A stretch of 64,000 nt of DNA. Origin: Cyanophora paradoxa CCMP329. Taxonomy: Eukaryota; Plantae; Glaucophyta. Each line of letters begins with the position of its first letter. Positions within the stretch are counted from its first letter, which is position 1. The notes below the pieces were generated by a model. The model worked only from the letters and a program-made list of their open reading frames with translations. It was not told the DNA's origin and made no database searches. Both the position numbers and the translations under genes were made by a program. Location: contig QPMI01000200.1 in assembly GCA_004431415.1 (NCBI GenBank), forward strand, positions 128,308 to 192,307. The letters are read 5' to 3'. This document shows, piece by piece, positions 32,801 through 52,818 of this stretch.

Positions 32801-35800
32801 CAGCGCCTCCGCCTGCCCCGCCTCCGCCGCCTCCGCCGCCGCCCCGCGCGCGCCCTCCTCGTCGGTGGAGGCGACCTCGTCCTGCGCCAGCGCCTCCAGC
32901 CCGTCGAGCCGCGCCTCCAGCGCGGTCACCTGCAGCCGACTCGCATCGCCGGCCCCCGCACGCCGGCCCCGCCCTGCGCACCCCCTGCGCCGTCTCCCGC
33001 AGCTCCGCGCCGATGCGCGCCCCCGTCTCCTGTGACGCCGCCTGCGGGGAGCTTCGACAGCGCAGCAGATGGCGCTGCGACCCGGGGCGGCGCACGGTCT
33101 GCGACTGCAGGATCCGCATTGCGCCCTGCACCGCCGCTACGCCGGCCTGCAGCTCGGCCGCCCGCGCCGCCGCCGCCTCCTCGGCCGACCGCGCCGTCGC
33201 GAGCTCCGCCCGCAGCTCCGCGGCGCGCCCAGTGGCCTCGTCGAGCTGCGAGGCCGTGAGGGGCTCGGAGCGGCGTAGGGGTGCCGGCGCGCCTGGCGGA
33301 CGAGCTCGGCGTTGCGCGCGGCGAGGGCCTCCAGCTGGTCCCGGAGGCCGGCCGCCCCCGCCACGCTGCTGCGCTCCAGCTCGTCCAGGCGGGCCTGCAG
33401 CTGGGCGAGGGAGCGCTCGGCTGCCAGCTTCTCGGCGGCGAGCGCCAGTGCTGCATCCGCCTCCCCAGCCCTCTCCGCCGCCAGCCGCGCACTCTCCTCC
33501 TGTCGCGCATCGAGGGTCAGCCTCCTGATCGGGGGCCTCGAAGCTAGGGCTTCTAGGGCTGGCCGTGGCCGATTCGATTTCGAGACAAAGAATTTGAAAA
33601 GGGTGCCGCGATCGACCGTAGTCTGAATTGAGTTCCGGCCCTCGGGCCGGCCGCCCAATTGGACCCTCATTTCAGCTGCCCCCCGGCGGCGTTTCAACCA
33701 CAGCTCGCCCCCTTCGGCCTTGCGGCCTCGTGGGTTTTGCGGCGGTGTGGGGCCATTTCCGGTACCGGGGCCAGGATTGCGCCTCGGGAAAAAAATTTTG
33801 CTCGGATAGGTCCGGCCAGGCAGGGAGGGGGTTGCCCCCCTCCCCACGCGCCGCTGTTTCCAGCGGCTCGGCCGGACCCTAGGATTGCGCCTCGGGCCCT
33901 CCTAGGGCAGCTCGGCAGCTCAGACCTTCCCATGCCATTCGGGAGCGCTGTATCCCCGTATGTTGGGCGTTCCCCATCTAGGGGGGTGGGCGGCGTCGAT
34001 TGCGGCTCCCCGTCGAAAATAATCGCACAATTTCCACCTGGAAAAAAAGAGGCCCGAGTCGCCTGGTGGGACCCCGTTCCGTTGCAAACTAGCCCACCCC
34101 CCATTCTCTTGCGTCTTCTCCCCCCGCTGCAACGAACTCGGTAGCGCACCTTGGCCGTGCGGAGCTCGTCTCGCAGGCTCGCCAGGGCGGCATCGCGATC
34201 GGAAATACTGCAAGGGACGTTGAAGGCTTGGGGCGAGGCGCACGTGAGATTTGATCCGGGGGGGGCGGACCTGCCCACGGCGTCGCGCAGGTCCTCCCTC
34301 TGATCCTGCAGCTTACCCCTCATCTCCTCCAGCTCGAGCCGGAGCGCCTCTACTGTTTCTCGCGCCGCCGCGGCCTCCTCCACGGCCTCTTCCAGCCTGC
34401 CGGCCACCTTTTCAGCAGTCCGGCAGCAGCAGACGCCCCCGGGGGCCTGCACCTCGCGGCTTCGTCTGCTGCCCCGGCAGCGCGGTCGCGCGAGACAGCG
34501 GCGGCGCGTTCGGCCTGCTCCTCCGCCTCCCGGGCCCGCGCCTCGGATCGAGCGGCGGCCTCGTGCGCCGCGGTGGCCGCGCGCTCCGCGCCTGCGAGCT
34601 GCTCCCGGAGGTGCGCCGCGAGCTCGCCGCCGGCCGTCGCCTCGCGCCGCGCGGCCGCTGCGGCCTCGGCAGCTGCCGAGAGGTCCGCCTGCAGCGCCCC
34701 AGGCGCTCCTCGCGGCCGCGCGCGCTGCCTCCGCCCCCGTGCGAGCACCTCGGCCTCCTCCGCCCGCCCCTCCACGCCCCCGCCTCCTCCTCGGCGCCGG
34801 CAGCGCGAACCGCCGCAGCCAGGGCCTCCTCCTTCGCGGCCGCCGCCTCGGCGCTCGCGGCGGCTGCCCGCTCTCTCCAGTCGGCCGCTTCGCGCTCCGC
34901 GTCCGCCGCGCGCTGCTCGGCCCGTGCCGCCTCCTGCCCCGCCTCCTCACTTGCCGACTCCCGTGCTGCCATCGCTCCCGCCTCCGCCGCCGCCGCCCGC
35001 TGCTCGGCTGCCGCCGCCCGCTGCTCGGCCGCCTCCGCCCGCTGTTCCGCTGCCTCGACGGCCTCCTCGCTTTGCAGCGCGCGCACCTCCGCCGCCTCCG
35101 TCCTGTGCAAGCTCAATACATGGCTCGGAGGGCGCGGAGGGCGGGGAGATGGCACCTGGCGGCTGCCGCATCGACCTCCTGGCGAGCGTCCCGCAGCTCG
35201 GCATCCGATACGTCGACCCTGCGCGGCCCTCGGCGCGTGCCGCGGAGGCGAGCGGCGCGGCGCGGACCGGGCGGCGGCCTCGCGGGCAGCTGACTCGGCG
35301 TCGGCGGCGCTGCGGGGGGTCGGCGGTGCGGGGGTGGGCGGGGGCGGGGCGCGGGGGTGGGGGCGGACCGGGCGACGGCGGCCTCGAGGGCCCTCGCCCG
35401 CTCCGCGCCCTCCTCGCTGGCCCGCGCCCGCGCCGCCCGCAGCTCCTCCACTGCTCCGCCGCCTCCCGCTCGGCCGCCTCCCGCGCCGCATCGGCGGCCT
35501 CCAGGCGAGCGGCCAGGGAGGCGAGCGCCTCGTCGCGCTCCCGCAGAGAGGCCTGCGGCGGGTGAGGCCGGGCGGGGCGCCGGCGGGGGGCGGCGGGGCG
35601 GGCCAGCGCGGCCTCGTGGCGGCCCTCCATCGCCTCGAGCGCCGCCGGCAGCTCAGCGAGCTCCGCCTGCGGGGCGCTCGGGGCGGGGGCGGGGCGCGGG
35701 GCGGGGCGGGGCGGCGGGCCTCGGTGCGGCGCGCGGCGGCGTGGAGCTCCTCGGACTGCGCCCTCAGCTCCCTCACCTCGACAGCGCTCCGCTCCGCCCG

Positions 35801-37249: not shown

Positions 37250-38444
37250 TTACTCCGAAGCCGGCGCAGCGTCGCCACCCGCCGCACCGCCACGCCCGCG
37301 GCCACGGCCGCGGCCGCGGCCGCGGCCACGCCCGCGCCCGCCGCGCCCGCGGGAGCGCCCTCGGCGCCGGCGAAGCCCTGGTCCGGGACGAGCATGGTCC
37401 CAGGGTGGGCCTCCCCTCGCCAGCCGGGCCCGCGCCGCGACCACGGCCACGACCGCGCCCGCGCCCGCGGCCACGACCGCGCCCGCGCCCGCGCCCGCGC
37501 TCTGCGGGGGCGTCAGGCGCGGCCGGGTGGGGCCCGTGCGCGCAGCAAGGGAGCGCGACGTACCGCCCTCCGCCTCGACGGGCGCCGCCGACTCGACGAC
37601 CTCGCCGCCCGCCGCCGCGCCGCCGCGCCCGCGGCCGCGCCCGCGCCCGCGACCAGCCGGACCGGCGCCACGGCCGCGGCCGCGGCCGCGGGCCGGGCGA
37701 GCCTCATCGTACTCGCCGAAGTCCTCCTCTGCAAGAGCAAGCGCAGTTGAGTGTGACGGCGAGCGGCAAAAGGGCGACAGATAAAATTCACCCTGAAGAG
37801 GCTTCACCTGGTCCTCGGGGATCGGGGGCTGGTACCTGCCGCACGAGAGAGCTGTCAGCGGTCGGGACCAAAGGCGGCAACGGCGAGCTCGAACCCGGGC
37901 AAGCTGCTGTCGAGCTGCAGCTTAGAGAGGGTGATGGTCACCATAGACACGTGGCGAGTCGTCTCAAGCCTGCGCGGGAGCTCGCACGTCCCGCAAAGGG
38001 GCGGAGGGCGGGATACGCACTTGTTCAGGCCCTCCTCGATGGGCTCCCAGACGTCGGTGATGTCGGTGGAGTCGATCTTGGTCAGCTGGTGGAGGCCGGG
38101 GATGCGGCGCTTGATGATCTCGGCAATCGTCACCGTCTTGTTGATGGCGCGGCCCATAGCTTTCAGCACCACCTCGTTCGCATTCTTCTCGCCCTGCTCC
38201 GGAACAAGCTCGTGAGCTCGCAGTGGCCTCAGAGTGCCGTCGAAACGCGCGATGGCCAACCTGGAACAGGTTGGTCGCGTAGGAGATGTAGTTGCGCATC
38301 TTGCCCTGGGTGGTGATGCGGATCTGGCGGGCGCCCGGTGACGCAAGCTGGCGAGGACAGCGTCGATCGAATGATTCGTCGCACCTCATTCTCCTCGATC
38401 GACTGCTCCTGCTTGGGCTTCTCGACCCGACGGTACTTCTCCAT
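37250..38444 (-). CDS. Alba-domain (Rpp25-like) nucleic-acid-binding protein with RG-rich tail
   Basis: Exons MEKYRRVEKP..NE|IRITTQGKMRNYISYA..|VVLKAMGRAINKTVTIAEIIKRRIPGLHQ..DVWEPIEEGL..|ETTRHVSMVTITLS..|YQPP, then GRGRGRG repeats. Confidence 0.95.
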
Positions 38445-38853: not shown

Positions 38854-39838
<985 letters not shown>

Positions 39839-49162: not shown

Positions 49163-51434
49163 CTACGGAGCGGGGGCGAGCTTGCGGCGGAGGGCCTCGA
49201 AGAGGTCGCCGAGGGCGCGGGCGCCCCGCGGCGAGGCCGCCTCCCCCTCCAGCCCCCCCTCCGCGGCCACCTGCCCGCCGCGCGCCTCAGCCGGCGGCGC
49301 CGGTGCGGGGGCGGGGGCCGTGGCGGGCCGCGCCTCGACGAGGAAGGTGCTCGGAGCGGAGCGCATGATCTGCACGCAGAAGGCCACCTCGCGGCCCCCC
49401 GGCGGCCCCGTCGCGCCCCCGCCCCCCCCGCCCCCCGAGCCCTCCTCGCCATCGCCGCCGCTCCCCGCGCTGCTCGGCGTGAACGCCTCCCCCGCCTCCT
49501 CCCCCGCTCCCTCCGCCCCCTCCCTCCCCCCCGGCGGCGTATCTGGAGCGCCGCCGGCGTGCCCCGCGGAGGGCGCCTCGGGGGGGTCTCCCGAGGTGCC
49601 CTTCCGCCCAGGGGAGAGCGCCGAGGGCGCGGGGGGCCTGCGGGAGGCTCGGAGGGGCGCGGGGCGGGGCAGGGCGCGGGCACCGGAGGGCGGGGGGAAG
49701 GGCGGGGCCGATCTCCTCCGCCCCGTCCCCCGAGGTGGACGGGGCCTCGGCGGGGCCGACGCGCAGCAGGCCCTGGGCGGGGCTCGGGCGCGGCGGGCGC
49801 GGCCGGGGCGGGGCGGGCCTGGAGGCGGGCGGCGTGGCGGTCGAGGGAGCGGACCTCGCACTGCGCGCCGCGTGAGGCCCGCACGGCGGGCGGCCGGGCG
49901 GGCGGGGGGCGGGCCCCGGGTCGAAGGAGGCGACGGCGCGGGCGGCGTCGGCGAGCAGCGCCGCCGCGCTCGCCGCCGCCGCCACGAAGCGCCGCCCCGG
50001 CCCCCGCTCCCGCGCCGCCCGCTTTGCCGCACGCTCCGCCCCCGCCGGCGCCTCCCGCCTCGCCTGGGGGCGGCGTGGGCGGGACGGGGGGCGGGCGTGG
50101 GGCGGGCGGACGCGTGCGGCGGCGAGGAGGGCGTCGAGGCCGTGGTCCGTGTGGGACCAGGCGAGGCCCCAGCGCGTCGTCCGCCCCTGCACGAACTCCG
50201 TCACTCGCACGTTGCGCACCTGCGGCGGCATCAGGCGGGCGGGGCGGGGCGGGGGCGGGGCGGGGACGGGGGTGCGGGCCCCGCGGGCGTGGAGGGCGCG
50301 GCGGAGCGGGGCGAGAGAGGCCTTGCGGCCGAGCATGGAGGAGTACCAGAGGACGCGCGTGCCGAGCCGAGCCGACTCCTCCACCATGCGCGACACGAAC
50401 GCCACCTCCCCCCCTCCGTCGCCACCTCGTGCCCCCGCCCCGCCGCCCGCCCCCCTCCCGCCCCCCGCCCTGTCGGCGGGCGCCCGGGGCGGGGGCGGGG
50501 CCCGGGGCGGCGGCGGGGACCTTGGCGCTGGCGTCGGCGTCCTCGGGGGTGGCGAAGAAGGGCGGGTTGCACATGCAGAAGTCGAAGGCCTCGCCCTCGC
50601 GCAGCACGCCGGCGAGCAGCGCCCCCGCCTCCGCCCGCCGCACCTCGATCCGCCCCTCCAGCCCGTTCCGCGCCGCCAGCCCCCGCGCGTGCTCCACCGC
50701 CCCCTCCTCCGAGTGTGCCCCGCCGTCAAGGCGCGGCGCGCGGCGCGGGGCACGGCACGCGCAGAGGGGGCCCGGCGGGAGGGATATCGGTGGCGAGGAA
50801 GCGCCAGTTCGCAATGCGGACGCCCAGCAGCGGGTAGATCAACGAGTAGCCCGTCCCGCTGCGGAGAGCCGCCCATCGGAGGCCCGAGCCTGCAGCGCTC
50901 GCAGGGACCGGAGGCCCTGAGGTGCGCACATGTCGATGCCGTGGACGGAGGGGTCGCCCGACATGCGCCCGCTCTGCGCCAGCACGTCCTCCAGCCAGTG
51001 GATGTAGTTCGCCCTGCCCCGCCCCCCGTCGCGTCGCCTGGCCATGGCGCGCTGCGGCGCGCAGGCGCAGGCGCCCGCACCGGTTGGTGACGGGCGGGCA
51101 GAGCTGATCACGCGGCATATCCCAGTCCAGGTTGAAATCGTGCTTGAGCAGCACGCGCGTCAGCGCCCTGCTTGCGCGTCATTGCGGTAGCGCTGGGCGT
51201 CGCGCGTACGGGGCACCGGTTGGCGTCCGGATCGCGCCAGTCGATCGAGGGCGCGCCGAATTTGTTAACGAACACGCTGCGGCGCGCTTCGAATCGCCGA
51301 GTCGCGCGCGGCGGCTCAGGGCGGCAGACTCACTAGGGCGCGAACTCGGGATGCGCATCCGCCAGCTGCTTGAAGTCTGGATGCTTGTTCCTGTATAGGT
51401 TGCGCTCGTGGGGCGCTCGCTCTCTCTCAGCCAT
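49163..51434 (-). CDS. METTL16: METTL16/RlmF-family U6 snRNA m6A methyltransferase
   Basis: MAERERAPHERNLY..PDFKQLA, LTRVLLKHDFNL..LCPPVTNR|ANYIHWLED, GIDI|GTGYSLIYPLLG, FDFCMCNPPFF, GGEVAFV..WYSSMLG, EFVQGRTTRWGLAWS. Confidence 0.96.
50715..50787 (-). other. U12-type AT-AC intron in METTL16
   Basis: Donor ATATCCCT at 50787, branch CCTTGAC at 50731-50725, acceptor AC at 50716-50715. Removing 73 nt gives the required frame change and FLATD-SEEGAVEHA. Confidence 0.85.
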
Positions 51435-51487
51435 CGCGCCGTCGGTGTATCCCCTCACACCTTCGCCCCCCTTGGCGGTTTCTCCTC

Positions 51488-51549
51488 TTTTTGCTCGAAC
51501 TGTACCTATTTTGCTCGAACTGTACCTAATTTGCTCGAACTGTACCTAA
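51488..51549. promoter_or_regulatory. 3 x 20-bp tandem repeat next to a TATATATA tract in the divergent METTL16/DPCD promoter
   Basis: TTTGCTCGAACTGTACCTA(T/A) three times; TATATATA at ~51557. Regulatory role inferred from position only. Confidence 0.5.
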
Positions 51550-51775
51550 CCTCGCTTATATATATGAAACTTTTCCAACTTGGAGCAGCACGCCCTGCCA
51601 GTTCAAGCTTCGTCGTCGTCTTCAGCGCGCCGCTAACGAGTCGCGCTCGACAGATCGTTGAGCGCACCGCTGCCGGAGCTTTACCTAGCCAGGCCCCCAA
51701 AGAAGCCGCGCGCTTCCCAGCTTCTTCTGTGAGGAAGCCGCAGACGGCGATAGCAGCCACGCCTGGAGCGCCAGG

Positions 51776-52818
<1,043 letters not shown>

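Follow-up and report, generated by a model that had tools for sequence, protein, structure and literature searches.

In Cyanophora paradoxa 77 minor introns have been described by Larue & Roy (2023), who found a significant match to the Rfam models of the minor snRNAs only for U11 and suggest that the splicing machinery of this organism is transformed (PMC10639083). The genome comprises 99.94 Mb in 712 contigs, has a GC content of 67.6% and harbors introns with a mean length of 86 bp (PMC6704402). Conversion between the two intron classes is generally assumed to proceed from minor to major and to be nearly one-way (PMC10639083). METTL16 installs m6A43 on U6 (PMC7960923), and a literature search yielded no paper that ties METTL16/FIO1 to a minor intron. 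The intron analyzed here lies in the METTL16 gene of C. paradoxa and belongs to the same class as the 77 minor introns, METTL16 not being named in the text of that study (PMC10639083). It is an RNA-verified instance of a kind of intron already known in this species.

The intron is the fifth of the gene and spans positions 50715-50787 on the (-) strand of the window, i.e. the whole stretch of 64,000 nt that was analyzed. It interrupts the Asp codon 135 of the FLAT-D motif in phase 1, and the reverse complement of the region, 73 nt long, starts with ATATCCCT and ends with CCTTGAC-N8-AC. The 5' splice site ATATCCCT (50780-50787, (-) strand) agrees with the consensus RTATCCT(T) at positions +1 to +6 and +8 and is mismatched at +7, where C replaces T; the first-pass annotation, which had proposed the intron, had noted a donor deviating from the consensus by one base. 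A C at +7 is a mismatch to canonical U11/U6atac. The branch site CCTTGAC (50725-50731, (-) strand), also located by that annotation at a distance typical for U12-type introns, has its presumed branch A at 50726, at -12 from the 3' end; this assignment follows the consensus (T)CCTTRAC, found about 10-20 nt from the 3' end. The AC 3' splice site (50715-50716, (-) strand) is not preceded by a polypyrimidine tract. Thus, the intron resembles U12-type AT-AC introns in its ends, its ATATCC donor, its CCTTRAC-type branch site with the A at -12, the missing pyrimidine tract, its phase 1 and its position as single minor intron amid major ones. It differs from them by the C instead of T at +7 and the G in the branch site, and, unlike in typical U12-type AT-AC introns, the intron body of 73 nt is very GC-rich and resembles the other introns of the host, the GC content of the window being 0.61-0.85.

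Only one of the ATATCC/GTATCC sites of the window, that of METTL16 intron 5, has a CCTTRAC-type branch site downstream, and the remaining RTATCC sites, which have none, were rejected as U12 introns. A loose chain of donor, branch site and acceptor arises 0.19 times per simulated window by chance (at least one in 23 of 150 windows) and the motif alone is therefore not proof; the proof of METTL16 intron 5 is the combination of spliced RNA, reading frame and position. We regard its assignment to the U12 type as very probable.

The region is covered by public runs of one organism, X1 (study P1), X2 and X7 (study P2), and X18. The RNA status of X1, X2 and X7 was guessed by a tool and is borne out by precise exon joints at GT-AG sites. 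Contigs of these three runs, which come from two studies, join 50713 to 50787 and skip 73 nt, with a slide of one base that includes 50715-50787, i.e. exactly AT..AC, giving GCCACCG|ACTCGGAG, the very junction that had been predicted. The four upstream introns are likewise confirmed by contigs of X1, X2 and X7. X18 is DNA-like and contains none of these splice joints; one of its contigs spans 50657-51884 and shows no difference from the window, and the intron is therefore real DNA and not an assembly error. The intron is cut out at AT..AC, which restores the METTL16 reading frame. A retained form is not evident in X1 and X7, where the contig depth in the bin of the intron corresponds to the exon overlap alone (contigs drop rare forms). 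If translated, the retained intron reads FLATDIPPAG..., followed by a stop, as an in-frame TGA (50728-50726) inside the branch site ends the protein ahead of the catalytic NPPF motif.

According to the first-pass annotation no GT-AG or GC-AG solution keeps the residue spacing of the orthologs. An enumeration of all frame-restoring GT-AG, GC-AG and AT-AC pairs contradicts this, as three of them preserve the spacing: 50787..50715 (AT-AC), 50785..50713 (AT-AC) and 50776..50704 (GC-AG). The GC-AG pair does so at the level of the sequence, and it is the RNA only that excludes it: the three pairs yield distinct mRNA letters and the RNA joint agrees with 50787..50715 only. The AT-AC pair 50785..50713 (73 nt), which would give different mRNA letters, is absent among the joints listed, 14 weaker joints lying outside this listing, and was rejected. 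The same holds true for the GC-AG pair (73 nt; FLATDIPPGAVEHA), which is absent among the joints listed and has a poor donor, CCC|GCCGGG. Splicing of METTL16 at this GC-AG pair, or a frameshift that is just an assembly error, would dispense with an AT-AC intron altogether. The GC-AG pair preserves the number of residues and, moreover, the conserved D-I, and the METTL16 sequence of the window contains at least one genuine indel error (at 50407); however, the AT-AC junction is found in three runs and the DNA contig agrees with the intron at every base. This reading is already refuted as the main form and we give it next to no weight.

The ATG of METTL16 lies at 51434, and the four introns upstream of intron 5 are GT-AG introns of 49-71 nt. 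On the (-) strand exon 1, the upstream end of which is inferred, extends from the ATG over 51334-51434. It is followed by intron 1 (51277-51333, GT-AG, 57 nt, phase 2), at a position shared with Diversispora, Basidiobolus, Saprolegnia and Balamuthia, intron 2 (51168-51216, GT-AG, 49 nt, phase 2), shared with Diversispora, Basidiobolus, Saprolegnia and Acanthamoeba, intron 3 (51014-51080, GT-AG, 67 nt, phase 2), shared with Diversispora and Basidiobolus, and intron 4 (50859-50929, GT-AG, 71 nt, phase 2, GID|I), shared with Diversispora, Basidiobolus, Acanthamoeba and Balamuthia. Exon 5 (GTGYSLIYPLLG...WRFLAT; 50788-50858, (-) strand) encodes part of the SAM-binding region, is covered by RNA contigs and matches PF05971 110-132. 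Exon 6 (50521-50714, (-) strand) starts with D-SEEGAV, contains the catalytic NPPF motif and matches PF05971 139-197 (E 1.3e-9); its 3' end presumably lies near 50521, and the RNA contigs stop at 50526-50535. A later exon with the H-E-V-A-T-E-G-G-E-V-A-F motif (50282-50435, (-) strand) matches PF05971 232-271. All METTL16 introns other than intron 5 are GT-AG or GC-AG introns without U12 motifs.

The exons, which were searched singly, match PF05971 in order, and the best PDB matches, obtained with exon 6, are structures of human METTL16. For local alignments the joined protein was used. The gene combines the PF05971 domain with the GxG and NPPF motifs and has eukaryotic METTL16 proteins as best matches. 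Its identity to named eukaryotic METTL16 proteins is 36-51%, and across the N-terminal domain it is 42-51% identical to most homologs from eukaryotes; in a protein tree the deep branching has no resolution. Residues 129-150 of the spliced model align without gaps to 337 of 414 homologs, all 337 of which have D or E at the junction codon. Most of the homologs that are not gapless here are plant proteins, which are shifted by one residue at a later point. Both the identity of the gene and the residue spacing across the junction are thus as initially proposed. The gene also shares the GIDIGTG, NPPF and GGE motifs with the METTL16/FIO1 U6 snRNA m6A methyltransferases (PF05971) and, judged from its family, it is a putative U6 A43 methylase.

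Downstream of 50521 the gene model is uncertain as a consequence of assembly indels. At 50407 the window misses one base of a G run, X2, X7 and X18 carrying an extra C after this position, and the missing base gives the METTL16 exon a spurious frameshift within its EGGEVAF motif. The segment 50436-50525 is very GC-rich and is not crossed by any long contig of the four runs among those listed; no obvious GT-AG intron closes the frame between exon 6 and the HEVATEGG exon, which makes further indel errors, or an intron that escaped mapping, likely in this segment. At 49861-49913 ((-) strand) three runs share an RNA joint that leaves out 53 nt, reading CC..AG (or GC..CA); this is probably a GC-AG intron of which the assembly lacks one G, or otherwise a non-canonical intron. 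RNA-supported GC-AG introns are located at 49773-49818 ((-) strand) in METTL16 and at 52341-52401 ((+) strand) in the neighboring gene, and GC donors seem to be common in this genome.

The introns of METTL16/FIO1 were mapped exactly in 11 genomic loci, from Salvia, Vanilla, Marchantia, Diversispora, Basidiobolus, Balamuthia, Acanthamoeba, Saprolegnia, Neocallimastix, Anneissia and Tubulanus. This comparison of intron positions, which had been suggested along with the intron, revealed that the same site is occupied in five loci and that the intron is of the GT-AG type in all of them. Three land plants and two fungi have the intron at the same codon and in the same phase (phase 1, Asp/Glu codon), with lengths of 83 nt in Salvia, 302 nt in Vanilla, 280 nt in Marchantia, 97 nt in Diversispora and 53 nt in Basidiobolus. 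They differ from the intron in C. paradoxa in being major GT-AG introns, four of the five with AG| at the exon end, and in having no U12 branch motif, which is missing in Basidiobolus, too, although minor introns abound in this genus. A minor-type intron is thus present at this site in none of the five (11 loci being a small sample). The site is devoid of an intron in the amoebae Balamuthia and Acanthamoeba, the oomycete Saprolegnia, the anaerobic gut fungus Neocallimastix and the animals Anneissia and Tubulanus. Moreover, all five 5' introns of the C. paradoxa gene coincide with positions in Diversispora and Basidiobolus. The gene thus keeps an ancient structure, and chance is an unlikely reason for the shared position of intron 5. 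As the site of intron 5 is shared with plants and fungi, we infer that it is ancient and that the intron has switched class there, a new observation of this analysis.

Small indels also occur precisely at the junction codon in several further protein models from fungi, which is what an intron at this place would lead one to expect. Public FIO1/METTL16 models err at this site (Vanilla, L004 1601-1902; P0284, P0332, P0347 and P0282), the errors being a wrong acceptor or small indels, a sign that the junction is hard to predict in plants and fungi, too. In Diversispora (L007) and Basidiobolus (L012) a micro-exon of about 12 nt (P/M-IPN) seems to be present in the LCPPIPNR motif, and Saprolegnia has an intron nearby. 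The GTATCT donor of intron 2 in Balamuthia was rejected as U12-like, being the start of a CT microsatellite. A search of metagenome contigs with a degenerate pattern of exon end and U12 donor for a second U12 copy returned three copies of bacterial RlmF only; eukaryotic genomic DNA is probably thin in this collection.

Based on these findings we favor, with a probability of roughly 75%, that METTL16 intron 5 is an old minor intron of the U12 type, which was converted in plants and fungi and has no special regulatory job. Following established minor-spliceosome biochemistry, U11/U6atac-like RNAs would pair with the donor ATATCCCT, a U12-like RNA would pair with CCTTGAC, bulging the A at -12 (50726), and the AC acceptor would be picked by its distance from the branch site. 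The natural inference from the intron would be a working minor splicing system, as implied by the first-pass annotation. The complete set of U11, U12, U4atac and U6atac in canonical form that this annotation calls for is putative, as U11 is the only one matched in C. paradoxa (PMC10639083). A scan of the 64,000-nt window with Rfam models, at gathering and E-value thresholds, detected no spliceosomal snRNA. That the AT-AC intron is removed not by a canonical minor spliceosome but by the major one, or by a machine that is transformed or hybrid, would be in line with the detection of U11 alone, the transformation proposed for C. paradoxa (PMC10639083) and the C at +7 of the donor. Nevertheless, donor positions +1 to +6, the branch motif, its distance from the 3' end and the missing pyrimidine tract are all typical of the U12 type, and failure of the Rfam models on GC-rich, divergent RNAs would be a simpler reading, so that we consider another machine improbable. 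As to its history, the intron most likely was minor in an early eukaryote and stayed minor in the glaucophyte, underwent separate conversions to the major GT-AG type in land plants and in fungi, and disappeared from the sampled animals, amoebae, the oomycete and Neocallimastix. An ancestral minor intron is favored because conversion from minor to major is the standard view; what counts against it is that all five orthologous introns are major and that no second U12 copy was found in the metagenome contigs.

If the site was ancestrally occupied by a major GT-AG intron, which in the glaucophyte lineage then changed into a minor AT-AC intron or gave way to one, one change would suffice instead of two. 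Not only are the five orthologous introns major, but so are, in both lineages, the four neighboring introns common to the gene and to fungi. A route would exist as well: after loss of the old intron, the usual coding sequence for Thr-Asp-Ile (ACN GAT ATC) already spells G|ATATC, a latent minor donor, and V or I follows D/E in about 90% of the gapless homologs (I in 122 of 337), while the C. paradoxa gene has S; bacterial RlmF spells GGATCTGATATCC at the corresponding place. A major origin has been inferred for 15-20% of human minor introns by Olthof et al. (2024), and a large gain of minor introns is known from Physarum (PMC11347168). On the other hand, several concerted changes are needed to turn a major GT-AG into a minor AT-AC intron, conversion is assumed to be nearly one-way (PMC10639083), only 11 outside genes were read, a comparison by eye of the intron with exon 6 shows no remnant of a duplication, and the Asp-Ile match may be coincidence, since any phase-1 AT-AC intron after G reads Asp-Ile. 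An ancestral major intron thus appears unlikely, and we are equally doubtful about its extension, i.e. a switch from major to minor at a site as old as the plant-fungus split, with glaucophytes making new AT-AC introns that are spliced by divergent snRNAs missed by Rfam. A possible cross-talk point between spliceosomes had been suggested at the outset. As a regulatory switch of this kind, the intron would be spliced slowly, limit METTL16 and tune U6 m6A and thereby major splicing, and two facts would suit such a role: retention of the intron leads to an early stop ahead of NPPF, so that the TGA in the branch site would truncate the protein made from unspliced RNA, which might itself be subject to decay, and METTL16 is the installer of U6 m6A43 (PMC7960923). 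The analysis gave no evidence for such cross-talk. No ortholog among the 11 loci has a minor intron at the site, the retained form is not seen in contigs of X1 and X7 (which drop rare forms), m6A on U6atac is not listed in a review (PMC7960923), and Larue & Roy argue that such functional biases are largely neutral. As the intron is major in plants and fungi and the site is empty in the six other genes, a conserved regulatory role is unlikely; we think it improbable that the intron acts as such a switch, and most likely METTL16 intron 5 has no special regulatory job.

The immediate consequence is a corrected METTL16 gene model at a junction where read-through of the AT-AC intron mimics the conserved Asp-Ile and a GC-AG model could take its place. 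One RNA-verified minor intron is added to a lineage already known to have such introns, and the site is a clear-cut example of a class switch at a position of great age. Should a genome-wide comparison show that major introns are turned into minor ones in Cyanophora, or that minor introns arise there anew, the case would carry greater weight, as conversion is usually held to be one-way, and also because three of the four minor snRNAs of Cyanophora were not found.

METTL16 is arranged head to head with a gene of the DPCD family (PF14913; 51776-52684, (+) strand). Transcript contigs start at about 51458 (METTL16) and at 51464-51476 (DPCD), and these close starts imply that both genes have a very short divergent promoter region in common. 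The region between them (51434-51776) contains three copies of a repeat of about 20 nt, at about 51490-51550. Elsewhere in the window the gene for nuclear RNase P RNA is located at 33610-33978 ((-) strand; Rfam RF00009, 33 bits, E 4.6e-6), and one helix region of this RNA is enlarged by an insertion of about 116 nt. Two intron-split genes follow, one at 38859-39700 ((+) strand), presumably encoding NAC alpha, and one at 37855-38390 ((-) strand), which we take to encode a protein of the Alba/Rpp25 type. This Rpp25-like gene is about 4 kb away from the RNase P RNA gene.
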